64,000 nt of DNA from Andalucia godoyi And28 (taxonomy: Eukaryota; Protista; Jakobida), in contig VRVR01000025.1 of assembly GCA_009859145.1 (NCBI GenBank), positions 264,131-328,130 of the forward strand. Reading direction: 5' to 3'. Below the pieces are notes generated by a model, which was given only the letters and a program-made list of their open reading frames with translations, was not told the DNA's origin and did not search any database. Both the position numbers and the translations under genes were made by a program. Below are positions 1,626 through 59,000 of the stretch, one piece after another. Numbering within the stretch: position 1 is the first letter of the stretch; every line of letters begins with the position of its first letter.

Positions 1626-2004
1626 TTGCATGGACAATAAAAATAAAAATAAGAAATGAGCGTCGCTGTGCGAGAATGCAACGCGGCGGCGTGTTTATAT
1701 AGGGATTTCATGATCAAAATGGGGGCGAAACGAATCGGGCATCGTGTGGACGGAGTTGTCAAGATAACAAACGCATGCGGCATGGCGCGTGGCAGTGTTT
1801 TTGTTTTTACGTGTGCTTTAGACTGCTTCATCATATCGCAATATCACAAGAACAGGTATTTTGCCGGTTTTTCGCTTTTCATTTCTCTCTTCTTTCTCCT
1901 GCTTTTTAATCTTACAAATAAATAAATAACGAGATAAATGGATACAGTTTCGAGCACGAAACAATAATTACAGCTCAAATTGCTTGCCTGGAGAGTGGCT
2001 AGCG

Positions 2005-3856
2005 TTAGATTTGGGCAAATCGTCGGCTTGCTGCTTGGATAGATGACAGCAGCCCTGTGGGCGGTATTCCAACCGTGCCTGCTGCCTCTGCAGGCGGGTG
2101 TTGCCGTTTCTGTGCTTTCGCCTTTTTCTCGGCTCTACGTTGATTTTCGTCTGCAACTTTATTTCGCAGGAAAGCAACCGCTTCCTGAGCAGTCAGACAG
2201 AAACTTGACGTCTTTCCTCGAGGCTTTTCAATGCCTTGCTTGCATTCGCTGACAAGACTCTTCTTTGACGGGTGCGCTGCTGCCTCTGTTTCTGTACGAC
2301 TACTGCGGCTCTTTTGCGGCCTTCTGCATCGTCATCATCATTGTCATCGTCGTCGTCGTCATCATCATCAACTGCATCATCAATCTCGGGCCGCTCTGAT
2401 GCGATACTGGACGAATGCGGTCGTGTATGATTGCATCCGCTGTCCCAAAACCGCATTTCAACAGCTTGTTGTGTGACTTGCTCTGCTTTCACAAACTCTG
2501 CTTCAAACGTGTTCTTCCGAAGCGGGAACAGCCCCGTGACTTGAAACGCACGCTCGACATGCATAGGAGAGATGTTCTTCCACGCCTTCATCAGGCATTG
2601 CGTGTTGACATCGTCTTCCTTCGTTAGACGGAACACCGAACCGTCCTGCAGCAACACATGTTTCCCGTTCTCAATCCCGTGCTCTCCCATTTTCTGCTTC
2701 TCATACCGGAACGCGCTCTTGACGATCTTGTAGCACTCGACATCCAAAGGCTGCATTTTGTGGGTGCAGTGCGGAGGAAACGTGACCAACTCCCAGTTGT
2801 TTGCGCAGCACCATTCTACAGCTTCGATCGTTGTATGGCTGCTGTGTCCGTCCACAGCCAGTACGATTTTTGCGTAGCGACGCTTAGCGGGCAACTGGGA
2901 TTTGAGGTCCTCCAAGAACTCCACAAAGAGAGTGGAGCCTATCCATCCTTTCTCGCTTCGAGGGATTTTCAGTTCCGGATCCTTCTTCAAGAGCACCTTC
3001 TGCATGTAGTCCCAACGACGGTCCTGTGTTTGAATACACCATCATTGGACGAAATGCTTTCCCATCTGCCGAGATGGCATTGATCATTGTCACGTGGTTT
3101 CTCTCCGAGTTGATGGCCATCTGCACTCTCCTTGTGCCTTTGGGAGCGAGAACACGCAACTTGGACTCTTGATCGCCTTGGACACCTGTCTCGTCCATGT
3201 TTACCACTCGCCACGCATCTTCCTGACTCGTGATTCCTGCTCGCGCATACGCGGTTTGCAGATCCCCGAAGAATTTATCGACGTTCTCCTTGTTGAATGA
3301 GTACTCACGGGATCGTTCGAGTGTTGAGGGCAGGCGGAGGACGAGAGACGACAAGCCCTGCTTTTCCATCCGCCGATTGAACGCAGGAAGCCAGTGCTTC
3401 GACAGCATTTGGACAAAAGCCTGCTTCAGGAGGGGCATATTCCTCTGCACTCTGTACACTACATAGTGATACAGCCGCTTCTCTCCGTCCGGGCACAGCG
3501 CAGCAGGTCGTCCTGCTTTCCTCAAGAAGGAAACGACTTCTTCGAGGTGATTCATGTCGGTGAACTGGTACAGCGCTCCCGGAATCTTCGAACGTCGTCT
3601 TTCCTCTTCTGTTGGCACGACAGGATGAAAGGCTTGAGGCTGCCTACCTTGCGTTTCCATAAACGCACTTCGTGCACAGTCGTTTAGCTCAACAAGAACC
3701 ACGTCGTAACAGATGCCAACGCATTTGCGCACGGTTCGTTCAGGAGATTGCAGATCTTTGTACTTGACACCGTTAATGATACGCGCAAGGACGTCTTTCG
3801 TGAGCTGCGCGTCCGAATTCGCTGTTCTTCCGGTAGAGGATCGTTTTTTTGACCAT
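2005..3856 (-). mobile_element. pogo/Fot1-like (DDE_1, DD35D) transposase pseudogene with three single-base frameshifts
   Basis: Motifs NMDETG, LAVDGHSSH and PPHCTHKMQPLD, with 35 residues between the 2nd and 3rd Asp. CENP-B-type HTH-like segment GRPAALCPDGEKRLYHYVV. Likely ATG at 3856 (MVKKRS). Frameshifts at T7 3844-3850, CCC 3011-3013 and ~2195, after which a LTAQEAVAFLRNK tail runs to TAA at 2005. Confidence 0.9.
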
Positions 3857-4230
3857 TCTGATTGGTTTTGATGAAAAACGAACGTAAGAAAGAAGAAAGC
3901 GCGCCAAGACATTTTCAGCAAAAAAAAAAAACCGGCAAGAATACCTGCTCTTACGGTTAGTGGCAATGGCCGGAGATTTTCTTTTTTTATTTGTATGATT
4001 TGATTTTGATTGGCGGAAGACCGAGTCGGGAGCATCGGGAACGAAAAAGGAAAATTGACTTGTTTTTCTTCCCCCATTAATTCGATACCGTTCTGCTTTT
4101 GGGAAAGAGCTTTTCTTTCAGTTATTCAGGATCGATATCTACACTCGAGTGAATAAAGAGAGGGTGGTGGGTGTTGTTTTTTGTTTGTTGTTGTTGATTA
4201 AAAAAAAGGAAGGAAGAATAGGAAAGAAAG

Positions 4231-5055
4231 ATGGCGCCTCCTACAGTGTTAACATATGACGGATCTCGTGAGCAGGCGTCGTTTCGCAACTATGATGACA
4301 AGCATTGTCGTGAGACGGTGCGTGCGTTTTACTATGAGCAGCATGTGAAGCAGACGTATGATTATGTGCTGCATCAGAAGAACAACTTTTTGAAACGTGA
4401 TCGCAAGCGAATGACCGTTTGGGAAGCACTGGAGTTTCTCGATACGCTGGTGGATGACAGTGACCCTGATACAGATCTCTCGCAAATTCAACACTGTTTG
4501 CAGACTGCAGAGGCGATTCGCAACGACGGACAGCCGCGCTGGATGATTCTTACGGGACTGATCCATGACCTTGGGAAAATCTTGTGCTTGTTTGGAGAGC
4601 CGCAGTGGGCTGTTGTTGGCGACACGTTCCCTGTGGGGTGTCCTCACGACTCGCGCAATGTGTTCCACGAGTTCTTCTGCGACAATCCAGATTCGAATGA
4701 CGGTAGGTTCAATCAGAACGGCAGACTTGGGGTGTATGAAGAAGAGTGCGGGCTGGAGAACGTCCACATGTCGTGGGGCCACGATGAGTACATGTACCAC
4801 ATTGCCAAGAACAGCAGCAGTCTTCCCGAGCCTGCACTGTACATGATCCGATACCACTCGTTCTATCCGTGGCATCGCGAGCATGCGTATGACTATCTTT
4901 GCAACGAGAAGGACAGGCAGATGCTTGAGTGGGTCAGGAAGTTCAATCCGTACGATCTCTACACGAAGGGCCTTTCCAAACCGGATGTCGAGGAGCTCAA
5001 GCCATTCTACCTCGATCTCATCAACGAGTTTATCCCGGGTACCATCAACTGGTAA
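4231..5055 (+). CDS. MIOX: myo-inositol oxygenase
   Basis: Motifs FRNY, LVDDSDPDTDLSQIQHCLQTAEAIR, GLIHDLGK, WAVVGDTFPVGC, SWGHDEY, IRYHSFYPWH, FNPYDLYTK and a C-terminal W. Confidence 0.97.
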   Translation: MAPPTVLTYDGSREQASFRNYDDKHCRETVRAFYYEQHVKQTYDYVLHQKNNFLKRDRKRMTVWEALEFLDTLVDDSDPDTDLSQIQHCLQTAEAIRNDGQPRWMILTGLIHDLGKILCLFGEPQWAVVGDTFPVGCPHDSRNVFHEFFCDNPDSNDGRFNQNGRLGVYEEECGLENVHMSWGHDEYMYHIAKNSSSLPEPALYMIRYHSFYPWHREHAYDYLCNEKDRQMLEWVRKFNPYDLYTKGLSKPDVEELKPFYLDLINEFIPGTINW

Positions 5056-41682: not shown

Positions 41683-44442
41683 CATGCAGTCCTTACAATT
41701 GGTGTTCATTTGTACAACCATAAGTAAGAATGTCCTTGTAGTTTGATATCCACAACCTCGCAGATCCATTTGTCGTCTGCTACCTGCAGCGATTCCTCTG
41801 TTACGATTATTTCGGACTTTGTAAGCGAGAATGGGATTGAGTTTCATCTGCTCGATGACAGCGAAACCCACGAAGGATCCCATTTGAAACTTGAGTGACC
41901 TGCATCAGTGTCGTTTCTCCAGTATCATCGACTAATACGACGCAGAAGAACGGCACAGGTTTCGAAGCTACGAGTCGATTGACGTTGACGAATCTCAGCA
42001 GATTCAGATCCGGATTCTCGCAGCCCTCTTCGATCACTAGGTCATCAAATATCCCGAGACAGGCTAGACGATGAAGTCCGAGACGACCAAGAATAGTCGC
42101 ACAAACCGCTGTTGAACTGACATTCGTATTTGTGGAGAACTTTCGAATCCATTTGTTCGTCCTCTCAAATGCAAAAGCTGTGTTGAGTGAGAGCAATCCA
42201 AGTAATCTGGTGACATGGACATAATGTTGCGCCATGTGCAGAGAAGGTCCAGTGAAAAGACCTTGATTCACGAATGCCGAAAACGTGTCTCGGAAAGATA
42301 TCCAATACATTTCTGGTAGTTCTTCCGTGAAGAAGTCTTCATCCACATCAAAAAATGCTTTTCTGCAGAAAAGAGCCAAGTACTTGGAATGCTGGAACAG
42401 GGAAGACCAGATCTCAGAGCTGAAAAACTCGTGTTCAGAAGGAAGCATCTCACAGAGTGCAACCGGAACATACAACATTGTTAGCATCTTTTGATGTCCT
42501 GTACAGGTCGCCTTCCACATCTTAAATGATGTGAACTTTGCTCCAGAATCTCCATCTTTTCTGAATATCGGACGAAGAACATCACAAAGACAGCTCCAAA
42601 ATCGAGGAGGAAGACGATTGTTTGAAAAATACGATCCAAGTAAAGACATATGATCGATCACAAGATTTTCGCCCTCCGTATGAAAGAGATCAATGTTCAG
42701 AGTACGGGGCATGTCGTCACTCAGTCTCCAAAGATCAGAAAACGAAGAGTATCCCAACGAAGCAGCGACTTCTTCCCTCCGGCGGGAGTCTGACGAGCTG
42801 AGGTCCCGAACAAATAAATGCTCATTGGGAAGTCGTCGAGGGTAGACATCGAACGTGTCTGACGACTCTCGATGAACCTCCTACCGCATACGCATGCTAT
42901 CTGGCCCTCCAGAATACATGCAGTGCGTGCAGGGAAATTTGCTGACACCGAAGCTTTTCAACCCAGCTACTTTGTTACGTGCCACGCCATCCACGACACT
43001 GTTGGTGTAAAACGGGACAACGAAAAGGCGCGCTTTACGAAGCGGTCCGGCTGCTTCGACACTGAACGTTGGTAGGTTTATGAGAAACGCTGGAGGAAGT
43101 TCTTCCATGCTTTTCACAGCAAGTTGCACGACCTGCGAAGGCGCATCCTGTTCCACGTTGCGACACAACACGAAAGGGGCAAACAACGACGAGCGCATTC
43201 TCTCAGGGATGTAATGTACTCTCACGCCCGTGAGTGTAGCGCAAGCAGCATAGCCCGGAGAACTTTTGCGCCTTGTCATCGGCAGCCCATCAAAGAATAG
43301 CTGAATTGGTGCAAAGACTAACTCAGTGTGATACGAGGCATCTGCAACTGCCTTCTTATGCAACTCCATCCAATTATGTTTTTGTTGATGCTCTGCAAGA
43401 GCAATGAAGTGTCTCTCACATTGCCAGCGCTCATCCACTCTTCCATTGGAATGTGATGTGATCATTTTCATCGAGGGAAGAACGTCATCAAATGGTAACC
43501 CTGTTGCAAGTCGGTTGAAAAGGGGCTGCAATAGCGGTTGGCTCTTCTGAGTCGACCTAATCAGCTCTTCGACAATTGTCTGCGTACTTACCCAAGACAG
43601 CAGAATCGGAAAAAGTCGGAATACGACAATGTCCTGTCCGCATATCGGCCGTTCGACTCCGGAAAAAGACGGGGCCGCTTTCCACATATGACTGCGCACC
43701 GTGCGCGCGTCTTTAGGGAACTTGAAACCCGGACGATCCGGACCGGAAGCTCCTAAACCGGCTTCTTCGACGATTACTGATCCCCCAAGAAGAAACCTCT
43801 GCATACTGTTTTTGAGTCCAATTTTGCTCAGCAAGCATTCTACACAATTTTAGGTATGCTTTCGTCATTGTCGGGCCTTGCAAGAGCATGACAGCAGATT
43901 CTGTGTTTTAACGTTGCCCAGTCTAACACCACAACCTCCAACGTTGACTCTGGAGTGGGAGACGGTGGCAAACTCTGGAACTCCTCGCCACCATCATCAC
44001 TATCATCATCATCATCACTCGCATCGTTCCACGTGTCTCCAAACCCCAATTCTTGTTCAGCGGTGCCACCAGTGTCCGGGAAAACTGCACGATGACCGTC
44101 CTCAGACAACGACGTGGTGCTACGCGGACGTTTTGGAGCAGGCAACGAAGACCGTCCTGCCTCCAGTCTGGAATCCCTGAGGCGCGGATGAATACAGACA
44201 TGTAACCCAAAGTAATGATCAAGCAAATGAGCATGCGACTCCAGAACGACTCTGCAACCTGTTTCCGGGCATGGTAGAGGAAAATTGCAAAGGTGGATCC
44301 TTATATTAGCCTGCAGATGCCTTTGAAGGCGAGACGCTACTTCGAAGGACATCGGGCATAACGGACATCTGTACCGATTAACCCCATCGGTCTGCGGAGC
44401 GATCGACGTGGGAGCGGGATTATCACCCACCCGCAACTGCAT
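41668..44442 (-). mobile_element. Decayed CACTA/EnSpm (CMC) transposase with N-terminal C2H2-like fingers
   Basis: Motifs QLFFDG, VVDGVARNKVAGLKSFGVSKFPCTHC, NIDLFH and PSLHMAQHY...FAFERTNKWIRKFSTN follow the CMC D-D-E pattern. Lesions: frameshift at T4 43848-43851, in-frame TAG at 42881-42883, probable frameshift near 41880. Confidence 0.82.
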
Positions 44443-44776
44443 GTAAGTAACAAGGGACTAGATATGAAGAGCGGAATTATTAAAACGGATGTACCAAGCA
44501 TTCAACATGATTGTTTTTATTCATCCCGGATTCATCGCGGATTCTCCACCAGTGTTTTTCGCTCTCCAGGAGTGGATTACTATGAAAAGCAATCCAAGGT
44601 CATCCGCCGGACTTCGCGGATTGCTTGCTGTTAGCTGCGCCGTTGAAGGAACAACACAAATGGACTACGAGCGTTAACGGCCGTTGCATTTGTCCTGGTT
44701 ACGGTGGTTGGAGACTAAGTGTCGGGACTCGAGGACTGTTCAACTTTGGATTGTAGATACGCAAAGTCTAATCAAG

Positions 44777-45028
44777 GTGACCAAGAAGCGACGTAACGCG
44801 GGACGCGCCAAGAACGGACGTGGCCACGTCAAGCCCAAGGCATGCTACTACTGTGGACGCCTCGTTGCCAAGGACAAGGCCATCAAGCGTTTCATTGTCC
44901 GCAACATTGTCGAGTCTGCCGCTGTTCGTGATCTTTCTGATGCGTCTGCCATCAAGGACTACGCTCTGCCGAAGTTGTACATCAAGCAGTACTACTTCGT
45001 GTCGTGTGCAATCCACTCCAAGACCGTT
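44777..45028 (+). pseudogene. RPS26: Truncated 40S ribosomal protein S26 (eS26) copy
   Basis: [17 protein letters not shown]...[23 protein letters not shown]...[23 protein letters not shown] sits at the Met position, a zinc-ligand Cys is replaced by Phe, and homology stops abruptly at codon 84. Confidence 0.93.
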
Positions 45029-45064
45029 CCTGCAGTTTTTCTTTTCATTGGTTTGTTTTATTTT

Positions 45065-47177
45065 TCAAACGGTATTTTCATTTTTCTGTCGACAACACAA
45101 TGGACTAGGATCTGAAGGCGAAATTGCAGGTTGTTTAGGAGGCCTCGTATCTTCGTAACCAGCGTCTGCCCTTCTTTTGCGTTTCATCTTGCAAAAATCG
45201 TAGTTTGCGTGGATAAACATCATACTGTTGACAGTGTTCGGATGAAGACGGTGACGTCGGTCGGATATTGTGTATCCAGAAATGGAGAAGACACGCTCAC
45301 TACTCACACTGGATGCTTGGACACCTCCGTATCTGCGGGCTATATCAGCAACTTGAGGGAACAGGGACTGCAGCGATTTCCACGTTTCAGACCATGTTGG
45401 TAGATCGTCACCAAGCCAACGACATGGATGGTTCACATACGACGTGACAATTGACTCAAAAGCATCTTTGGATACATGCTCGTCGTCATCAAATATCGGA
45501 CCTATGAGCCGAAAATTTTGAGAAACCTCGGATGAAGAGTGGGGAGTATTGTTCCTTGGAGACGGAGCTGGAATCCTGCTTCTCGACGCAACAAAGCACA
45601 TAACAACCGTTCTACCTCACGGCTTTCGCTCGACGGCATGTACCCTGTTTTGATTCGCGGGTCGAGAACCGATGAATCCAGAAATGTTTTCAAACGCGCC
45701 CTTAAGTGATTTCCAAAGGATAAACGAATTGAAGAAAGTGCTGCATTGCACAACTCCGACGTTACTGATGACACTTCTGCTTCAACCGTTTGCGGACACT
45801 GCGATTTTCTCTTGCGAGCTTTTTTGGAAGTCGTTCCTACGCAGTCCAGAGTTTCGTCCACAAAAATAAACTCCAGTGGCGAGATGGAGGCGTCGATCAC
45901 GTCAGTTTTGTCGACTGTCTTCATGTTGGCTTGCAGCTCTCGGATGGTTCTTTCATCGTGGTCGGGATAGAGACTGAATAGCGTCCTAACAGTCGGAATA
46001 ACGAGGCTTGCAACCGTTTCTTGATTCATGGAGAACCAACGGGTGGCTTGTTCGAAAGGACGCAACACAGGAAGTAAAGATTCGATAAAAGACCATTCAA
46101 CAGAATTCATCCGCAGATCTTCACGCTTGATCGCAACCAACACAAGTTCGATGGAGTCCTTCAGTTTTAGCAGTCGTTCAAGCGCATACAGCAGAGAGAT
46201 CCATCGCGTCTTACATTCAGTTTTGATTGTGAGAGGAGAGGTGACACCCGCTCGTTTTTGATACTCTACCAATTCACGAGTTGCCTTATTGCTGCGATGG
46301 AAGAATTCCATGATTTTCTTGGCCTTTTCAACGACGTAATCACACACTCGATTACTGAGAGATCCTTGAACTGATAATTGCAGAGTATGGATGAAACATC
46401 GAAGATGCGGGAGATTGGCATTCACAACAGCGTTCACTTGCACGTCAGCGTTATCAGTTGTGACCGAAACGACCGTATCATGCCGAATTCCGTAATCTTC
46501 CAGGCATTTGGAAAGGCTTGTGCGCAAGGAATCTGTGGATTCCCCTGATGGCAGGCAGCTCAAAAGAACATTCACAATTTCGAAGTCTTCATTCACAAAA
46601 TGCGCTGTCACTGCAACAAAATGATGGCCATTTTTCGACGACCATCCATCTGTCGTCAAAGAAACTCCTGATGCATCCTGTGAAAGAGAATCGCCGACAA
46701 AATCATGAATCTCCTTTTCAATCTGAGGCAACAACGTCTGTGACAGGTGCTGTCGATCCGGGATTTGAAACCTTGGCTCAATCAGTTCGAGGAGCTGCTT
46801 GAAACCTTTGTTCTCCACAACAGACAAAGGTTGAATATCATGGCAGATCATATAAACAATGGCTTCACGGAGTTCCTTTTTGCGACTATTTGTCAGAGGC
46901 TTGGCAAAGAAGTTGCTGATAGTAGGCGCGACGGTTGATTGGGGTGAGGAAACAGCTTTCCAGTCCGAAAGATGCTTCGATTCTAAATGATCGCGAAGCT
47001 TGTCCGTTGTCGGTTTGAGATACGGATACGTCTTCGGCTTCTCGTTCATCCTGAAAACGCAGAGTGCACAACAAACCTCTGGATGCTCCTTGCTGTCACG
47101 GATCACTTCGACGCCATTCCCAGACGAACAGTCTCTCTTCCTTGTCAAGGTGATTGTTCTCGTTCTTCCGGTGTCAC
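45065..47177 (-). mobile_element. hAT transposase (BED-like finger, DDE core, hATC dimerisation domain), frameshifted, with its 5' end replaced by a pogo fragment
   Basis: CCALC...LRDHLESKH, SLTTDGWSS, TTDNA, CFIHTLQL, TRWIS, LDPRIK. Then in another frame, after a shift near 45560-45600: FPQVADIARRY..ASSVSSERVFS..DRRHRL. Confidence 0.9.
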
Positions 47178-47449
47178 CCAGGTACTTTGACTCCATTTGG
47201 AGGAAATCCTGCTTCAGGAGGGGCATGTTCCTCTGCACTCTGTACACCGCGTAGAGTGATACAACCGCCTCTCTTCCTCCGGACACAGCGCAGCAGATCG
47301 TAATAGATGCCCACGTACTTGCGCACGGTACGCTCAGGAGACTGCAGATCGTGGTATTTTGCACCATCGATGATATGCGCAAGGACGTCCTTCGTGAGCT
47401 GCGCTTCCGAATTTGACTCTTTTCCTGTTGGGGATCGTTTTTTGACCAT
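47178..47449 (-). mobile_element. 5' fragment of a pogo transposase related to 2005-3856, abutting the hAT ORF
   Basis: Aligns by eye to 3390-3511 and 3703-3856 (MVKKRS...QLTKDVLA.II.G.KY.DLQSPERTVRK; VYRVQRNMPLLKQ), with many third-codon-position differences. Confidence 0.9.
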
Positions 47450-47755
47450 TTTGCGGAGCTCAATAGAAGCGTAATGAACAATATCAGATGACGATTTTTA
47501 ACACGAATTTTCCCGGCATGACAAGTGCGAAAAAAACCGGCAATATTAGGTGGTTTCACGATGCAGCCGACTGCTCCAGTCCATACGTGATGTTCTGAAG
47601 AGCTGTCAGTGCCTCTGAAGGTCTGTTGCACTATGCAACTACTTTAACCGCTGGGCTAATGTTGTGGTTATGACACACTAGAGTGGGCCACAAGTGCAAG
47701 AGATCAACGCCGTCCTTTACAACACATTCTACAAAAATGAATCAGAGGTTTACAT

Positions 47756-50041
47756 CTACATAGGGTTTTGTCTCCTTAGAAAAAGCCGAGAACCACCGGT
47801 CTCTTTCACTGTCCATAAGCGCTGCAACGCCGTTTCCAAACAGTCGTGTAGCCACGTATCTCCCCAAAGGAAATGCACGTCATACCTCAAATCTTTGCAT
47901 CGTTTTTCGTGTTCTGAAAGAACTTTCCCATGCTTACGAATCGAAGTGAGAGGGATCTCAGACTTCCCGGCCTGTTGTTGGAGCGTCCTGAGAGCATTCT
48001 CAACAGCTGAGCTGGTTGTAGTGATCACCAACTTTCCTAGGCAGACATCGACATCAGGAATTGTGCGTAAAAGAGCACCAAGTACCTGCGCCATACCCTT
48101 TTCAGCTTTCGCGATTGCAACTGCAATATAGGGAGAACTTTTTTGAGGAGGATTGTCACGATGGGTCTCTGGATCACCGCCATCCATTTTCACGGACGAC
48201 TTTTTCCCTTTGCACTGCCAGGCATTAATTTCAATTAGGGAATCCGATAATTTTCTCAGTACGAGACCGTCGATGCCTATTTCGTTTTCCCATTTGAGCA
48301 CGACGTTTGTGTACTGATTAACATCATCCATTCCCAGCAGTAGATCCTGATTGGATGCCTCGCGTAGCCACAGTTTGTCGTCTTTGCCGATGAATACACT
48401 GGACGAACTGTGTGATTGACACCCGCTACCAAAAATTCGGTGAATGCGTGGAAGCATCAAGTCCTCAAGGTCAAAACCTGCGTTCGTATCTGTGCCACCA
48501 TGTACCATTTGGCAGACCGTGAACATGCGGACAAAGTCCAACACCGGTGGTGCGCCTTTGCTGAAATACGTCTCGGCATCACGAGGCCGTGATAGCTGCA
48601 CATGCGACGCAGAGAAATTTTCATCTACCAACGTCTGCTCGACATACAACAGTCCATGTTCCACCCACTTATGAATCCAAGAGTCAGCTATCCCTTCGTC
48701 GCATCCTAGTAATCTACGCAAGTTAGCAATAGCTTCCGAGTGAGAAATGCTTACATCCTTCGGCACAAGAAAAGCTTTGCCTTTTGTTGCCCAGTGTACA
48801 ATTGCTTCCTCCAGAGCAGACGACTGACGAGACACAGTCTTTCGCATCAGATTCACGAAGGCATAAAACGGTGACTCAGTATTTGAAAACTCGTAGGCAG
48901 GAGAAACCAGTCGCGGAAAATCTGGAGCTGCTGGGTCAGAAACACGGCTGTGAACCGCTCGACCGATGCCGCCAGTGAAATGCATCGCCTCGGAAACCTC
49001 TTCGTCAGAAAACTCGCGACCATACCGACACTTCATGTATGATTTGAGCTGTGCACAATCACGTATCGCTGCCACATGGTAGTATTGACACAGGGATTTG
49101 TTGAAGTCTGCGTACCTACTGTATCTTGGGTCTCGCATACTCTCGAACAACATGGAACGAAGGTTGGCAGAAGAGCCAGTGAGGATCGCAAGTGAACCTG
49201 GGACATGTTTTGCAAAATACTCCAATTCAGCAATTGCTGCCACACAGACATCATTAGGATCGACGACACCAGGAACGAACAAAGATTGAACTTCGTCCAC
49301 TATGATTCCAACGGAGAACGGCAACTTACCAACCACCTTACGTAGATCCCAGTCTTTCAAGAGATGAACAGCGTTGTTAAGATCGTCGAGCCGGTGGCCG
49401 AACACTTGATTGAAATCACTGCCACGTTGTCGAACAAAAACCTCACGAAAGAGGAGACTCAGCCATTTCAGCGCTACAGGCCTGTCATATGGACTCTTAC
49501 AGTCGACATAGACGAGAAAAAAAGTACTAGAACATGCCGCCACCGCCACCGCCAGAGCTTTCACAATTGTTGTCTTTCCAGTTCCCTCAACACCATCAAT
49601 AATCGCATGATCCGTATCGAAACTCCTCTCTCGATTCCATTCCCTTTGCAAAACCATGCGGACGAGCTGGGTCAATAAGTCGGACAGCATGGAATTGCTT
49701 TGCTCGTAGATTGGAGGCAAGTACAATGGATGGTCGATCGATAATGTTCGCATCGCTGCCCATACTGACCGGAACGTCGCTAACACTTCTTTGAATAGGA
49801 ACACTCGCTCCTCGATCAATACATGTGGAAGGACAAGAAGTTTCTGATACACCGCTCGCGCATCTCGACACACCGCCAAAACGCCCTGCAATTCGCTGGT
49901 CACATTGTACGATTCCGGAGTTTGAGCGACTGCGTGTTGAAGAAAAAGAAGAGCGGAGGTGCTGAATGCTTCTCGGCCCAGTTGTTGATCCTCCTGCTCT
50001 GTGAGCAGGAGACCTTCCACCATAGAAGTGAGGTTGCTCAT
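47756..50041 (-). CDS. Helical N-terminus + P-loop NTPase + PD-(D/E)xK-type nuclease (Crinkler/RHS 'CR' effector-like architecture)
   Basis: Walker A GVEGTGKT, Walker B IIVDEVQ, ILTGSS and TGGIGR. C-terminal GIDGLVL...INAWQCKG fits a restriction-endonuclease-fold D..QxK motif. The ORF is uninterrupted (761 aa from ATG 50041). Confidence 0.75.
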   Translation of the reverse strand: MSNLTSMVEGLLLTEQEDQQLGREAFSTSALLFLQHAVAQTPESYNVTSELQGVLAVCRDARAVYQKLLVLPHVLIEERVFLFKEVLATFRSVWAAMRTLSIDHPLYLPPIYEQSNSMLSDLLTQLVRMVLQREWNRERSFDTDHAIIDGVEGTGKTTIVKALAVAVAACSSTFFLVYVDCKSPYDRPVALKWLSLLFREVFVRQRGSDFNQVFGHRLDDLNNAVHLLKDWDLRKVVGKLPFSVGIIVDEVQSLFVPGVVDPNDVCVAAIAELEYFAKHVPGSLAILTGSSANLRSMLFESMRDPRYSRYADFNKSLCQYYHVAAIRDCAQLKSYMKCRYGREFSDEEVSEAMHFTGGIGRAVHSRVSDPAAPDFPRLVSPAYEFSNTESPFYAFVNLMRKTVSRQSSALEEAIVHWATKGKAFLVPKDVSISHSEAIANLRRLLGCDEGIADSWIHKWVEHGLLYVEQTLVDENFSASHVQLSRPRDAETYFSKGAPPVLDFVRMFTVCQMVHGGTDTNAGFDLEDLMLPRIHRIFGSGCQSHSSSSVFIGKDDKLWLREASNQDLLLGMDDVNQYTNVVLKWENEIGIDGLVLRKLSDSLIEINAWQCKGKKSSVKMDGGDPETHRDNPPQKSSPYIAVAIAKAEKGMAQVLGALLRTIPDVDVCLGKLVITTTSSAVENALRTLQQQAGKSEIPLTSIRKHGKVLSEHEKRCKDLRYDVHFLWGDTWLHDCLETALQRLWTVKETGGSRLFLRRQNPM

Positions 50042-50154
50042 CTGCTGGTTCCCTTTTGTCGCTGTTTCCAAAGAAATCAGAAATTCGTTGAAATTGAGCA
50101 AGAAATCACGATTTATTATAGCAGACGGGGAAACAGTGGTTTCTCAAAAAATTG

Positions 50155-50196: not shown

Positions 50197-52344
50197 TTGC
50201 TCCCGCCCTTTTTTTTCCCTCTTGCGATTTACGATATTTTATCAAGCACAAACAAAAATTAAAATTAAAAAAACAGAATTAATCATTGAAACACCAGTGA
50301 GCATGGAAAGCTCATATTTCAACATGCAGAATTCGCATGGTAACGTGCCGTTCGACCCGTTCCAAGCTTGGAACAGGGCTGTGGAACAGTCTTCGCACCC
50401 CACGTCACTTACTCCGGTTCCGCAAGTTCCCGCAGCACTTCAGCAGCACCTTATCCAACAAGGACTCTTGGCACCGGTCTCCCAAGGAAATCTCCAGCAA
50501 CGGCCCCAAAGAACTTTACCAAAATTGCCCGTTGTTTGGAGGCACAATGCAGCGGAAGCCCAGTTGATGCAGAATCAGCAGCGTTCCACAGTAATCGCGA
50601 CGGCCGTGTTACCTCGTGCCCAGAGCGAACAGAATCTGTATCCCATTTCACAAGATCAATTCCCCGAACTTGGACAGACTACAATTCGAGATTTCATGTC
50701 AAGGTCTGCAAGGAAACGTCAATTGCAGGAAGCGCAACATGCACAGAAGCTCAAGGAGAAAGCAGATGAAAAGGCGGCCCTGTAAAGCGTCGAAGAGGAC
50801 AAAAAAGAACAAGCAATTGCCGAGAAAACAGCAGGGCATAGAAAAGAACACCCGCCAAAGGATGAAATCTCGCAGCGCGACAAAGAGCTGTTGTGGAACA
50901 ATCTGATCCTCGGAAATGCCAACATCAGAGAACTCGCAAGCGTGATGCAGCACAAGGAGACGACACTCCGAAGAACATTTGATCGGATGCGGAAGCGACA
51001 GGAAAGAGGAGAGGATCCGCTCGAGCCAGTCGCACACGGAGCGGCGAATCCAAAGTGTCGACGGCCGAGAACCTTCTCTGACGACCATCTTCTTTGGGCC
51101 GCACGGCAAATGGCGGTGAACAGCTCCCTCCACTACGTCGATGTGATGAAATTGCTGCAACAACAATTCCCCGAGCTTCAAGCACTTGATCCGCATTCAA
51201 GCTCAAAAACATTGAAATATTGGATGCACGATTACTTGGGATTTCGAGCAGCTGACTTCTACCCGGTACCAGTCAGCAGAAACTTGGCCAAGAACATCGA
51301 CGCGAGATTTGACTATGCGACGACGATGATGACAGAAAAACGACGGTCTTATGACCAAGCCATCTTCATCGATGAAACCCCGTTCAACTACTGCGTCCAG
51401 CCGGTCAAAGGACTCAGCGTCCGAGGTTGTCGACCGATGCTGCCGATTGGCACACTTTCCATTCCGAACATCACTGCAATTGTTGCAGTCAATCGCACCC
51501 GCATCGTGTACTTCGAATGCTTCACGGGAGGTGTCAATGGGATGACATACGCACTGTTTCTTCAGAATCTGTTCAAGGAACTCACCTCCAAGGGCGAATT
51601 GCCACGGCAAGATGGGGCTCGACAGCTGATTCTTCAGGACAACTGCGCATTTCACAAGACCAGCATCGTGCAGTCTGTCATTCCGCAAGATGTGGAACTA
51701 GGCTACATACCTGCATATTCGCCCTTCCTGGATCCATGCGAAGAAGTCTTCAGTATCTGGAAGTACTACTTTTCCAGACTGCTGACGACCATTATCCCAA
51801 CATCGAAAGAAAACCTCGTCGATCTCATATGCAAGTCGTACTTCGAGATCACCACCAAGCAAATCCAGGGGGCGTGGGATCATACGCTGTCGTTCTTTCA
51901 CGACTGTTTGTGCCGGCTACCAATTTCGTCCCGCCGACTTCTCGATCACATTCACGCAGGTGACGACAAAGAAGCTGCAGCTATTCGCAAATTCGGAGAA
52001 TGGGGCCTTGAGCAAAGACCCGGGGTTCTGCGCGGAGCCGTCGAGGCCGGCGTAGAGGCCGAAGATGATGTCACGGACGACGCTCTGCAAGAAACGGGGC
52101 ATCAGCCTCCCTTTGTGTCGCTCCAGGACACGAAATCAAGCATCTCAGGTCAAGAGAAGACCTTTCCGGACAGACAGCGTACTGGTGGTGGTGAACAAAA
52201 TCATGACGATGATGACGACAAGTGAAACAGCAGATTCCCTGCGAAGATAAATTCTCCAAAAAGAAATCGAAACGAAGCATTGCCAGGCAATTTTGTACAC
52301 GGGCGAATTGGCATAAAAAAGATTAAAATGTTTCAGGGAGACAT

Positions 52345-52386: not shown

Positions 52387-53028
52387 AAATGAGACACTGT
52401 AAGTGACAATTGCAACAATTCACCTGACTTGGGGAATGGGTTATGGATGGGTAATCGGCTTTTTGAGAAGACAGTCGCTGTCACAAGCTGTCAAGTGAAA
52501 AAAATGCACGGGCAGTCAAGGATGCAACTGCAGCGTGATGTCATCCTCGTCGCACGCATCACCCCAGTTAAGCTGCTCTCGCAGATCGGAGCCGGATCCT
52601 GACGATTTCCTGCTCGGACTGAGGCAAGTCATTCGACATCTTTTTCCGTTTGCTGACACCGCTCTTGTTTGTTTACAAATGCAAAATCTTATCAGACACT
52701 ATTTGAGAGTTAATAAAATAAGAAAAGAAAAAGAAAAGAGAAAAGTCCAGAAAGATCAAACTCCGGGTTTTTGCCCAGATGGTGTGGGCACCGCCGGAAC
52801 CTGGATCGGTGGGTCACGGACTCATGGCCGAATGGGTGCCACTCTGGCAGCCAAATGTTTTGCTTCAAAAGGCAGGCACCGAAGTTGTTTCGGCTTCCTT
52901 CCGATCCCTTCAGGCCGTCACCTTCGTTCATCTACTTCCTCTCCCATTTTCTCTTCTTCAAGTATACAAATCGTAAAGCTCCTCGCAATTTCAGGACAGC
53001 GTCTTTTTAAGGAGTGCCTTCATCAGTT

Positions 53029-56000
53029 ATGGATAAACCACGTAGGATGGACAATACCTCCTCTTCCTCCTCTTCCTCTTCTGCGATTCCCAGTAACCCT
53101 TCTTCAAGTGGTGATGTTCGTGCGCGCCGCGAGCGCCCAATTTTTCCCAGCCGTGATTCTGCTGTCCGGGACTCTGACCTCCATCGTCCAAATTCATCTT
53201 CTTCGGTGCGAGTCCCCTTAGACACTGCTGTCAATAATGCACCGGCTTTCATTCCGACGAGTGGTAGTGGCACAGAAGACGACATGATAAAGGCTTGTCG
53301 TGCAGTTGTTTCACGCGGAGCATTTGTGACGATCCAAGATCTCCGCTCGGAATTGGCGAAGCTTGGGTGGAAGATTGGTTCCAAGAATTTGCATCGTCCT
53401 ATGTTTGAGAAGCTGCTCTGCCTTGAGAAGTGGTTGCAGAAAATTGATGAAAGCATTCCATGTATCTTTCTGGGATCGCATTTTCTGACATTGTATGATA
53501 TGGAGATAGCGATTCGAAGCCTCCCCGAGTTTAAGAGTGGCAAAATCAATCCATTTGATCTTTTTGGGAGTCTGGTTCATCATCCACAAATCAAAGCGAT
53601 GATCTCGAAGGGTGACGTTATCCTAGATCCGATTTGGCAGCGCGAGGGATGGTATCCACCTGTTCACGGTTATGAGACCATCGAGAACATTTTGTCCAAA
53701 TTTTTTGAGGCCTGTCGCCGGAAGCGGTCAGAAACGAGGGATTTGAATGCAAAACTGGATGATGCTGAGATCGTCTCTGTTTGCACAGATGGTCTTGATG
53801 AGTTCGCCGCAAGTCATTTGCCATCGTACCCGGGCATGAAAGAGCGACTGTCCAGGTCTGGAGAGCCCTTTTTCTCCCATAAACACGTTGGCGGAATCAC
53901 GCGTTATCGTAGATGGCCGATTGTTACAATTGGTATCATGCGTACTGGCCGTGATATTTGGAAGAAGGATCTCCTCGAAATTCAAAGCCTTTTATCTTCT
54001 CGTAGGCAAGAGTATCAGTCACTCACTTCCGCCGCTCAGGATATGCTCAGGAACTTGTCGAGGACTGTCCAACTGGGTGAGTCTCCTGTCGAAATGATGG
54101 GAATCACTCGAAAGTTCGTTTCGAATTTATTGGCGAAGCACTTGAAAACAGTTACAGAGTCTTCTCATCGACCGAAAAAACACAATTCAGACACAAGACA
54201 TGCAATTAACAGAATTCTTGAATCAGAAACGTTTGCGACATGCATCTCTTCGGTGTTAATGCCTCTTATTCTTGTCGCTGGAAAAAATTGGCTCTCAGCA
54301 ACAGCATCTGCAGGGAAGGATTCGACCGATGCCATCTCGGAGTTCTGTGTTCTAGCTGTCGTTTTACCTGAAGACTTATTCCCGAAGTTGGACTCTTTGT
54401 TTAAACGTTTCCGAGTCCGAATCGACAAGTTACGTAATCTTGATGAATCACGACAAGAGTCCGGTAACCGGACACTTTGTTTGCGTATGATTTTGTTTGA
54501 ATTTCTGGAAGCTTTGCAAGAGGCGTACATCAAGTTGTCGAATGGCTCTCGTTTCCCCTCTATTTGGGCATTCTTGCAAGAAGGCATTGGCAGGGATGTT
54601 TTTATCGAAAATGTGTTCGAGATTTTCCGATCGTGTTTGTCTTTGCAGGACAATTTGCGTACCAAAACCGCAGATGCACCTTTTACCGACGGATCACCAT
54701 TTATTGAGGATGATGATCGTGCTGGATTAGGATCTGTTGTTCAAGACGAGATTCTTGTAGACACCTTACGATACCAATTTTCTGTTTTGACGAACAATCC
54801 TCCAGATTTCAATCTGTTTCCTAGTTCCGGAACGTCCTTGCATCGGCTTTTTTCTATCTTGGCGGACATTGAAGTTGACGTATCTAGTCGATTTTCCAAG
54901 ACTGCCTCTTCCTTCAGTCAGTTGTGCAACCTCTCTTTTGTTAAGTTTCTCGTTGATCATTTCGCTGAGCTGTCTCCAGATCTCGATAGTTTCGCTAGCG
55001 AAGTAGTTCATGTTCCTCTGAGCAGCGTTTTTCAGCGAACGGATTGTTTGAGTATCGGCGAACAGAGGCAATCGTATATTTTAGTGAGGTTTTTGGCCTC
55101 TATTGGACGTGATAAGGCGTTTGTTACTGCCCACAAGGATGCAATTAAGCGCAGGCTCTTCGGAGAAAGGTGTTATCTGGACGATGCTGCTCAGAGAACT
55201 CTGTTTGCGGCCGTCAACAATATTTTTTCGAACAGCAGCTTGTGCGGGGCTAACGAATCTTTCAGTCAGGATTCCATCTTCATCGTGGACGCTCCGATCT
55301 TACTGGAATGCGCTCTGGAATCTTCGTCAAATTCGAATTGTATTTGCGAAATTGCAGATGATGCAAGATTCGCATCCCAAGTAATTAAGGTGGCGGGAGA
55401 CTTGCAGCGCTTTTCTGATCTCATTTGTGAACTTGCTTCGGTGCCGTCATGTGCAGATTTGTCGCTCGTAATGGATTGGGACAGATTGTTTCAGCCGCGC
55501 TTTGGGTCACTGATGGATGCGTTGTTGGAGGTGGCGTTAGCAGTTGCTCAAGATGCATGTCTTGGGAGTGCCGTCCAGAGACGTTTATTGTCCTCTCACA
55601 TGTTTTTACACTTTTCCGATTCCTCTTTTGTGAAGATTCCCAAAAACAGGACCATGGAGCAATTCCAGTCTTGTGTTGAGCATTCTCTTTTTAAGGAAGC
55701 AATCGAATGTGCCATTGCTTTGACATTTTCGTTGGCAAAATCGGGCTCGACTTTCGAGATTGCACGGGCATTGGTAACGAGTACTGCTTCTGAATTCCTG
55801 TCCAAGATTGATGTAGTGAATGCAAGCAGATTTGTCGCTGATCTGATCCTGATCTGTCCGTCGCAACTCATCATGTCCGTCGGTTATGAGATTTTTTGTT
55901 GCGCTCTCTTCTCCGCACATCCACATGGGGCAGATGAACTGGCTGATTTGGCAAGTCGATCGACTTTACATGCTGTGGCATTGCAAAGTGTTTACAGGAG

Positions 56001-59000
56001 GACAGGTCATGTTGTATCCGCAATGGATCGATTGGATGAGGTCAGTTCACATACTTCTGTCTCGCAAATGCAACTTACGATTCTTCCAGGTCCGCAGGGT
56101 ATCGTTCACGACTTGTCGCCTCAACTGCATGTCCCATCTTTATCTTTGATTGATGACCCATTCCATTCGTCCACTCACGAGATTCCACAGCAGGATGCCC
56201 GTTTATCACAGTGTTTGGTTGGCGACGAAGTCGACTCACTCCCTTCTGCACGTCAAGTGTTAGACGACATCCGATACGGTCTTGGCGTTGGTCTGGCTCG
56301 AGATTCCAACTCACCGTTGTCTAACTTGCAATCTATGATGACTCGCGCTTTGGACAGATTGTCTGCAGGTTTGTATTCAAAACAAGTGCACTTTGTTCTC
56401 GAACTGATCCAAAATGCGGACGATAATCAGTATGAGCCACTCGTTGCACCCCGAATCTGTTTCCATCTATGTGCCAGTGAGCTCCTCGTAGAATGCAATG
56501 AAATTGGTTTTTCGAAGGAAAATGTGAAGGCCATCTGCAATGTTGGAGAGAGCAGCAAGCTAAGGCAACGCGATAAGTTTGATTCTTCCAGTGACCGAAA
56601 GATTCGCCGTATTGGGTTTATCGGTCAGAAAGGGATTGGCTTCAAATCTGTTTTCAAAGTGACTTCAACACCCATCATCCACTCACGGAACTTTCATTTC
56701 ATGTTTGACTCCAAGGATCGGTCAATGGGATACATTGTTCCAATTCCAGTTGATCCTCCTACAGACTGGCAATCTGAGATTGGATTGACGAGAATGTGTC
56801 TTCCGTTTTCTGCAGAAACAGACTTCACTCAGATCAGGACGGGTCTTGACGAGATGGATGCTCCTTTGCTACTGTTCCTTGCGAACCTTACAGAAATTTC
56901 TATTCGTATTGACAATCGAAATGGACATTCTTATTATCGACAGATGCGAATTGATCGTTCCCGCTTGGATGATTCCGACATTATGGCAGTGTCTCAAAAG
57001 AAAACGACAGTGGATTTGAATTCACGGAACTGCGTTGCCTCCGACTTGACTGAGACAATCTGGTTAGTGAAATCTATTGTTTCTACTTGTCCGGTGCGCA
57101 GATCGCTGGATGATGATGGGTGTGACCGAGTCAGCAGCGATACTGAAATCTCGATTGCTTTCCCCATTATGGGATCTTGCACAATGGCTTCCAAATCGCA
57201 CATTTCAACAAGTTCTGAAGATCAGAGCAATCGTCGACAGTATCCTGTGTTTGCTTTTCTGCCACTTCGACATTATGGTTTCCGTTTTATTGTGCAGGCC
57301 GATTGGGTGATTCCAAGTTCTCGGGAAGCTTTGGATTCTTCGTCTCCGTGGAATTGCTGGATTCGAACCCAATTGCCGGCACTGGTTGCCAGATCAGTGG
57401 CCAATCGCGTGTCGCATGTTTTTGAGTCGTTTCGTTCAATTTCCGATTGTTCTCCGTGTTTTGACGATCTTGTTGAAGAAGCAATATCAGATGAACGAAG
57501 CCACCCTAACAGTAAGAAATCGGGAGGTAGCAGAGGCATTGATCATCCCTCCTCCCAATTCGACAAAGAGGTTCAACACTGGTCAACAATGGAATCGATT
57601 GTCGATATGCGCAAGCAAGATTCCTATCATTCTATGTGCGAGATCCTTTGTTTACTTCCTCTCCAAGGAGAACTTATCGAGTTCTTCCAGGGAATGGAAC
57701 TCCAGGTCTTCGCAGAATGTGCAGGATTCAGAATCATTCCCTGCATCCAAGAAGATGGCCAAATTTCATTGGAACTGCCTTCTAAATGCCTTCTTCTTCC
57801 TCAAGATGACAATGTGAGCAGTTTTTTGAAGAAATGCTTACCGACTCTGCACCAACACGGGCTTTATCTTGTCGACTCAGATTTCATGTTGCCCGAAAAC
57901 TACGCGAGAGCTCTGGGTGTTCACTCACTGGACGTGGCTACGTTCTCAATGCTGCTCACAGATGCCTGTCAAGATTGTGCAAGCGTCAAGAATTTCAATA
58001 TTCCTCACGTTATTGATATCATTGCCGCGATGAGTCAGACGAAGACGTCTCATGATGTTTTTCGTGATAAATTGAGCAAGATTAGATTCCTACCTCTTGC
58101 TTCTGGTAGATTTTCTAGTTTTAGTGAGATCAGGGATTGCTTCTTGTGGGATGAAAGGGTGATACAACGGATTGCAAATAGCGAACATCAGCAAACGCTT
58201 TTGACTATTCTTCCAATTCTTGACTCTGAATTTTCTACTCATTGCTTGGCAAATAAGCAAGTCTCTGAATTTCTGATGAAATTGTTTAGTGTCGGAACTA
58301 TTGGTGACCATTCGAGTTTCGTGTGGGTCCAATCGCATCTTTTGCTGAATCCAACTTGGGCGTGTGACGCTATTCCGACGACAGTGCTCGAATCGTTGTA
58401 CAGACTTGTGGACTATCATATTCACGACGCGAATCTTTGCCGTCGCTGTTCGAGAGATGGTGGTCGACTGTTCATCAAGAATCTGATCAGCACTGGCTGT
58501 TGGTTGCCGTGCGAGACAACTGTTGGAGAAGGAAACGAAGTCGACGGAGTCTATCATGTAACGCGTGAAAATGTATGGTGGATTTCCGCGCCGCATCAAG
58601 TGTCTGCTCGAGGATGCAAGGTTATCCGTCGCAGAAAGTGTGAATTCGCTATTCCATTGGGATTTTCTTGGACAGTTGTCTCTCCTGAAGTGCAAACTCT
58701 TGGATTCTCGGTCGAGTTACCGATCGTGGAAATGTTTGTCGTGCAGGAGAGACAAACACCACTTGTAGTTTACATGCAGTCCTTGAAAGACTGTTTCCCT
58801 GCAACGATGCGCTCAAATCACATCATTGAACTCCTTCAACAATCAGAACGGCTGCTTAAGGATCATCCAAATTCTGTCGTGAACGATGTCTTTTCTCCAG
58901 AGTTCCTTCATGTTGTTTCGTTTGCTTGTACATCGATAGAAAACGGACAATCCCTTATGCAGCGGTTGTTAACCGACGAGGCGTCTTGGCCACAAGATCT

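Follow-up and report, generated by a model that had tools for sequence, protein, structure and literature searches.

A mosaic of truncated pogo, hAT and eS26 pieces in the nuclear genome of the jakobid Andalucia godoyi

Introduction

For transposable elements with terminal inverted repeats (TIRs), gap filling with template switches at microhomology has been documented, and fragments of the host genome can serve as filler in the process (PMC8277862). The products of gap filling and of abortive gap repair comprise single-copy Pack-TIRs as well as elements that have lost internal parts and contain filler DNA (Tan et al. 2021, PMC8277862). The miniaturisation of Tc1/mariner elements is mediated by microhomology (PMC3814204). 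The locus described here, at 44742-47558 of the window, has traits of such products. It is composed of the 5' end of a pogo element, a truncated hAT transposase gene and a fragment of the host gene for eS26, and is very likely a non-functional and immobile mosaic, of which the three truncated pieces have been joined by double-strand-break repair, from which no transposase is made, and in which an interval of 79 nt that had been proposed to be an intron is not one.

The genome of Andalucia godoyi is compact (about 20 Mb) and intron-poor (PMC7050145). Among 864 characterised nuclear genes for candidate mitochondrial proteins just 12% contain introns; all of these are of the GT..AG type and measure 55 to 756 bp, 151 bp on average (PMC7050145). 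The assembly is a 454/Illumina draft with 150 gaps, in which the 454-based sequence was corrected by means of mapped Illumina reads, chiefly for the lengths of homopolymer runs (PMC7050145).

Sequences and comparisons

The window is the whole stretch of 64,000 nucleotides that was analysed (contig VRVR01000025.1, forward-strand positions 264,131 to 328,130); all coordinates are those of the window unless another sequence is named. When the translation of the hAT frame was used as a protein query, it retrieved EukProt models with the ANDGO_ prefix, that is, nuclear models of A. godoyi.

A protein search and a cluster look-up provided the intact pogo references, of 692 aa: ANDGO_07425 (P0013) and the Logan contig L002 (P0014; SRR7990717). 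The second pogo subfamily is represented by ANDGO_04790 (P0016), which is internally deleted. ANDGO_07870 (P0141), of 754 aa and present under two EukProt identifiers, is the intact hAT reference of the same family. At the DNA level, the pogo comparison involves three sequences: the chimera, copy 1 of the window, and L002.

Results

Setting and composition of the mosaic

The mosaic lies in a spacer of 3.3 kb that extends from 47756, where a 781-aa ORF has its stop codon, to 44442, where a C2H2 zinc-finger ORF begins; both ORFs are on the minus strand. The sequence comparisons show its composition, its breakpoints, its lesions and the lack of detectable mobile-element ends. The features are collected in Table 1.

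Table 1. Positions of the pieces of the mosaic, of the proposed intron and of the pogo copy used for comparison
Feature	Position	Strand	Basis and remarks
pogo copy 1, subfamily A, pseudogene	1854..3946	-	TIRs at both ends (inverted repeat I1); tblastn in three frames
Direct repeat, copy A, ACAACACAAATGGACTA	44651..44667	+	two matches in the window versus 0 expected
eS26 pseudogene fragment	44742..45032	+	291 bp; 31 nt of 5' UTR and CDS nt 1-256; inverted relative to hAT
A-rich stretch past the hAT homology	45033..45097	-	direct reading of the sequence
Direct repeat, copy B, ACAACACAATGGACTA	45092..45107	+	in the last hAT codons (DPSPLCC)
hAT transposase fragment	45098..47109	-	residues 71-751 of 754; 91% aa identity to ANDGO_07870; tblastn with P0141 and P0002
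pogo/hAT junction (GTC/GAA)	47107..47112	-	pogo DNA homology stops at 47107-47110; hAT protein homology starts with E71/M72 at 47109
pogo ORF remnant	47110..47449	-	transposase residues 1-53 and about 112-179 (of 692); 196-bp deletion and 2-nt insertion; blastn, alignments
Proposed GT-AG intron	47240..47318	-	most likely no intron
pogo subfamily B 5' UTR	47450..47529	-	68 nt that are 73% identical to the L002 flank (59-125), E=5e-7
pogo 5' terminal inverted repeat remnant, CCTAATATTGCCGGTTTTTTTCGC	47530..47558	-	TIR profile match; outer edge uncertain

The neighbourhood contains other long ORFs. On the plus strand, 50891-52225 encodes 444 aa with a DDE_3 (Tc1/mariner-type) transposase domain and is situated 3 kb from the mosaic; the neighbourhood therefore carries several DNA transposons. 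Further along the same strand, an ORF of 2912 aa (53014-61752) has sacsin and NOV_C domain matches. No Pfam family is assigned to the 781-aa ORF at the border of the spacer (47756-50101, minus strand), in which a P-loop-like GTGKT motif occurs, and an intronless ORF of 274 aa at 4231-5055 (plus strand) resembles myo-inositol oxygenase.

The pogo piece

In the initial annotation, the sequence upstream of the hAT gene was described as a diverged pogo 5' end that had undergone a 196-bp deletion at a microhomology and a 2-nt insertion, and all of this was recovered here. By blastn, 47182-47453 corresponds to 3394-3860, in the pogo copy of the window, through two blocks that are 83-84% identical, both sequences being on the minus strand. 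A region homologous to the N-terminal part of a pogo transposase is present, and two pogo copies are 83-84% identical to it in DNA; no named helix-turn-helix domain is assigned to it by Pfam. The three-way alignment with L002 places a gap of about 196 bp between the blocks, with the junction TTACGAT/CTGCTG at 47297-47301 and 4-5 nt of microhomology, and an extra CT at about 47255-47256. A tblastn search with ANDGO_07425 finds the remnant in three pieces and three frames. Its N-terminal protein sequence and that of ANDGO_04790 share about 90% identity.

The boundary of the pogo piece had been misplaced. It was thought to end at 47178 (SKYL), from where the sequence would belong to the hAT finger, while the homology in fact runs on via GDTGRTRTITLTRKRDCSSGNGV to 47110. 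The intact pogo proteins read ...SKYLSDTGRTRTITLTRKRDCSSGHGVKS... across this stretch, and the DNA of L002 can be aligned with the chimera down to 47107-47110. Compared to L002, the pogo copy of the window itself lacks exactly these 108 nt, which explains the attribution of GDTGRTRTITLTRKRDCSSGNGV to the N-terminus of the hAT. This copy, which had been taken as a reference gene at 2005-3856, is a pseudogene: an additional A directly follows the start codon, there are at least two further frameshifts, and the 108-nt deletion, which is in frame, lies between the short direct repeats GTGTCCAA and CTGTCGAA.

Outward from the ORF, the stretch 47507-47440 corresponds to the flank in L002, where a pogo sits inside a pogo-B-like start. 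A profile derived from three further pogo TIRs matches 47548-47530 on the minus strand; it is the third-best match in the window (E=0.097) and has the expected place and orientation. A weak blastn similarity also links the 5' TIR remnant with the TIR of copy 1. A 3' counterpart was not detected on the far side of the mosaic with either the TIR profile or alignment, so that there is a 5' TIR remnant alone and no pair of pogo TIRs. A candidate 3' TIR, CCAGTGTTTTTCGCTCT at 44549-44565, was rejected as being at the level of chance: the profile gives E=62 and 88 of 300 shuffled sequences reach the alignment score. In 44000-48200 there is no pogo sequence past residue ~179, the C-terminal coding part included, and the DDE_1 catalytic domain, which is found in copy 1 and in ANDGO_07425, is missing from the mosaic.

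Deletion derivatives and nests are common in the genome of A. godoyi, as seen with ANDGO_04790, L002 and copy 1. In L002 (1-135), an intact pogo of subfamily A is inserted right after ATGGTCGAAA of a pogo-B-like 5' end, which makes it a pogo nested in a pogo. Outside the window, the consecutively numbered models ANDGO_00202 and ANDGO_00203 are a C-terminal fragment of a pogo and a C-terminal fragment of a hAT of family 2, which suggests a second locus in the genome with a pogo beside a hAT.

The hAT piece and the junction

With ANDGO_07870 as query, tblastn aligns residues 71-590 with 47109-45571 and residues 594-751 with 45571-45098, at 91% identity. The first 70 residues are missing and pogo sequence takes their place. 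This lost part includes the SPVWNFF segment that precedes the CxxC..HxxxxH motif of the BED-type finger, so that the finger is incomplete, its CxxC..HxxxxH half being kept and its aromatic upstream half being gone. The assignment of the finger is based on this motif, as Pfam zf-BED gives no score even in the intact hAT copy. The junction is hence situated within the very DNA-binding domain that the fusion was meant to complement. The claim of a pogo-hAT chimera stands as far as the physical junction of two fragments, in the same orientation and reading frame, is concerned; the position given for the boundary is wrong, and a functional exchange of modules is not supported.

Further lesions follow downstream. 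An in-frame deletion of 18 nt is located at 45670/45669, and a frameshift that had been noted at about 45580, and that cuts off the C-terminal hAT part, was confirmed as a deletion of 10 nt at about 45571 with respect to ANDGO_07870. Compared with this intact gene, the frameshift is evidently a real deletion and not a miscounted homopolymer. The RNase-H-like catalytic core of the hAT (PF27041/PF27039, as precomputed for the published gene model P0001) and the dimerisation domain Dimer_Tnp_hAT (PF05699) are both present, but the 10-nt deletion puts them in different frames, PF05699 being found in the shifted one. DUF659 scores just under the Pfam cut-off (33.2 versus 34.7 bits). The final three hAT codons are unlike those of the intact copy. 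Beyond these, the A-rich stretch may be filler, or it may comprise the stop codon and the 3' UTR of the hAT plus a small insertion; GACAGAAAAATGA would fit the HRK-stop end of ANDGO_07870.

A hAT element is expected to have short TIRs and a target-site duplication of 8 bp. Neither hAT N-terminal coding sequence nor a bounding inverted repeat was found above the shuffle level in 44000-48200. The ends of the family-2 hAT contig L001, a family that is only 49% identical, show no similarity above that level to this same interval, and inverted ends that would bound the whole composite do not occur as a pair above the shuffle level. In the protein database no other protein spans the pogo/hAT junction: the only high-identity match is the window's own model P0001, which starts downstream of the junction, at the internal Met of 47049 (MNEKPK), and has no intron.

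The eS26 fragment and the direct repeat

The true eS26 gene, on VRVR01000012.1 (L003), has no introns, and the fragment is 94% identical to it at the DNA level. The fragment differs from it by a change of the start codon (ATG to GTG), by the replacement C74F, which affects a zinc-binding Cys, and by three further replacements. The possibility that the eS26-like ORF would be the real gene, truncated by an insertion, was rejected when the true gene was found on VRVR01000012.1. The ORF beside the hAT is a pseudogene fragment that might be taken for the ribosomal protein gene. A direct repeat of 16-17 nt (copies A and B in Table 1) flanks the 424 nt that hold the fragment. This repeat may be a duplication made at the time of repair or a long target duplication.

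The 79-nt interval

It had been proposed that an intron removes both lesions of the pogo part and thereby rescues the fusion, and the arithmetic of this proposal is correct: 79 nt run from the GT at 47318 to the AG at 47241-47240, both sites are of phase 2, and their joining would connect the frame of the pogo ATG to that of the hAT. The donor was said to be lacking from the other pogo copy, and it is indeed absent from both other pogo DNAs, which read AAATGCGTT and AAATACGTT where the three-way alignment has AAGTACGTG in the chimera. AAG/GTACGT is a respectable-looking donor, and the GT..AG boundaries and the length of 79 nt fit the published range of 55-756 nt for A. godoyi.

Nevertheless, both sites consist of ordinary, conserved pogo codons. 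The donor GTACGT spans the pogo codons K-Y-V, its GT having arisen through the synonymous change of AAA into AAG, and the acceptor TACAG spans the codons Y-R and is identical in all three pogo DNAs. Moreover, between the ATG and the hAT homology there are 99 other GT-AG pairs of at least 55 nt that restore the frame and are free of stops, and 59 of these span both lesions. The existence of a frame-restoring pair is no more than what chance gives; as chance alone is expected to yield one in a few hundred bases, it does not constitute evidence for an intron. The final 25 nt of the interval are 56% pyrimidine.

The frame upstream of the hAT is open over a length that has a shuffle probability of 0.0014. 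Two things account for this length: the +1 frame of pogo is open for 51 codons in the intact copies as well, and the 196-bp deletion removes the first stops. In-frame ATGs at 47226, 47196 and 47049 allow the hAT remnant to be translated without splicing, and the 10-nt frameshift would stay after splicing.

A scan for GT..AG pairs that join long ORFs, combined with Pfam searches on adjacent ORF pairs, yielded no verified intron in the window that could act as a splice-site reference; one candidate (34354/34432-34515) was inspected and was not verifiable. The window looks essentially intronless. Usable splice-site motifs of A. godoyi were not found in the literature. From these sequence comparisons, the 79-nt GT..AG interval is most likely ordinary pogo sequence that was formerly coding, and its splicing is unlikely. 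That the composite would be transcribed from the pogo promoter and spliced at these sites, by which the first helix-turn-helix of pogo would be fused to the truncated hAT, seems extremely improbable. If such a spliced transcript did exist, it would mean that a jakobid with very few introns had recently gained one out of sequence that used to be coding.

Discussion

Origin and fate of the mosaic

Three pieces lie together at this locus: a pogo 5' end, with one TIR, the 5' UTR and a damaged ORF start; the body of a hAT transposase without its first 70 codons and with no hAT termini seen; and part of the host gene for eS26, in inverted orientation. There are two routes by which they may have been joined. 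A resident pogo could have been damaged or excised, after which the gap would have been filled with template switches, or a nested insertion could have been followed by microhomology-mediated deletions. The first route is tentatively favoured, as the mosaic includes a piece of a host gene, and is the most economical. We infer this repair route, as well as a neutral drift of the pieces since their joining. The divergence from the nearest intact relative is about 9% for the hAT (aa), about 10% for the pogo N-terminus (aa) and about 5-6% for eS26 (DNA), and these similar values fit with one old origin of the mosaic and neutral decay afterwards.

The mosaic has no detectable pair of ends and most likely cannot move. 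At most, a truncated hAT ORF might be translated, unspliced, from one of the internal ATGs mentioned above. The significance of the locus is mainly one of annotation, the A. godoyi model that starts with MNEKPK being a hAT pseudogene fragment. If the origin by template switching is true, the locus would be a small case of gap-filling capture in a jakobid. To our knowledge, gap-filling capture has not been described in this group.

Other explanations

One rival reading is that of a functional fusion transposase, in which a DNA-binding module of pogo would have been swapped onto a hAT and a newly gained intron of 79 nt would remove both pogo lesions. The GT..AG arithmetic with its phase-2 sites, the donor that is unique to the chimera among three pogo DNAs, and the open hAT-bearing frame that extends back through the pogo part all speak for it. 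However, both splice sites are conserved pogo codons that compete with 99 alternative pairs, the last 25 nt have the pyrimidine content given above, and the open frame is accounted for by the +1 frame of intact pogo copies. Even after splicing, the 10-nt frameshift would still precede the catalytic Glu and the dimerisation domain, the BED finger would be cut at the junction, and such a protein would find no hAT TIRs here to act on. The published model is moreover intronless and the genome intron-poor (PMC7050145). The rescue of an exchanged module by intron gain, as put forward in the initial annotation, is not supported, and a functional fusion deserves hardly any credence. Almost as little is to be said for a mis-join of repeats during assembly. 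Transposable elements abound in the region and the 454/Illumina draft has its 150 gaps (PMC7050145), but pogo, hAT and eS26 have no mutual similarity that could mislead an assembler, the reads must be locus-specific given that the pieces are 5-10% diverged from their nearest paralogs, and the 454 assembly was corrected with mapped Illumina reads (PMC7050145). A mis-join is very improbable.

It is somewhat easier to imagine, though still very improbable, that the locus is a mobile, non-autonomous element of the Pack-TIR kind, framed by pogo ends, with captured hAT and eS26 fragments and movable by a pogo transposase. The pogo 5' TIR remnant lies at the outer edge, a host-gene fragment is found inside as in Pack-TIRs, and the weak TIR-like string at 44549-44565 has the right orientation. 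This string is nonetheless at chance by both the profile and the shuffles, a TA duplication is not definable, and a second copy of the junction was not seen among the predicted proteins.

Comparison with known systems

The immobile mosaic that is preferred here shares characteristics with several described systems. In the possession of a transposase domain in frame with a foreign N-terminal sequence it is reminiscent of host-transposase fusions and domesticated transposases such as SETMAR and the ZBED genes. These have intact ORFs that are under purifying selection, while the mosaic has four frame- or domain-breaking lesions and selection is not evident. As in decayed nested insertions, or graveyards of transposable elements, truncated fragments of different elements adjoin in a spacer that bears such elements, and other nests exist in the genome (the pogo in pogo of L002; ANDGO_00202/00203). 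Unlike in a simple nest, the missing half of neither element is present on the far side of the mosaic, and a host-gene fragment is included.

In contrast to a Pack-TIR, there is one TIR, and the host eS26 fragment is not enclosed by two. The products of gap repair differ from the mosaic in that its second TIR is not detectable and that its largest filler is the transposase gene of another superfamily. They resemble it in other respects: the mosaic keeps one transposon end, its interior has been swapped for foreign sequence that includes a fragment of a host gene, it has lost an internal stretch at a microhomology of 4-5 nt, and it is apparently single-copy.
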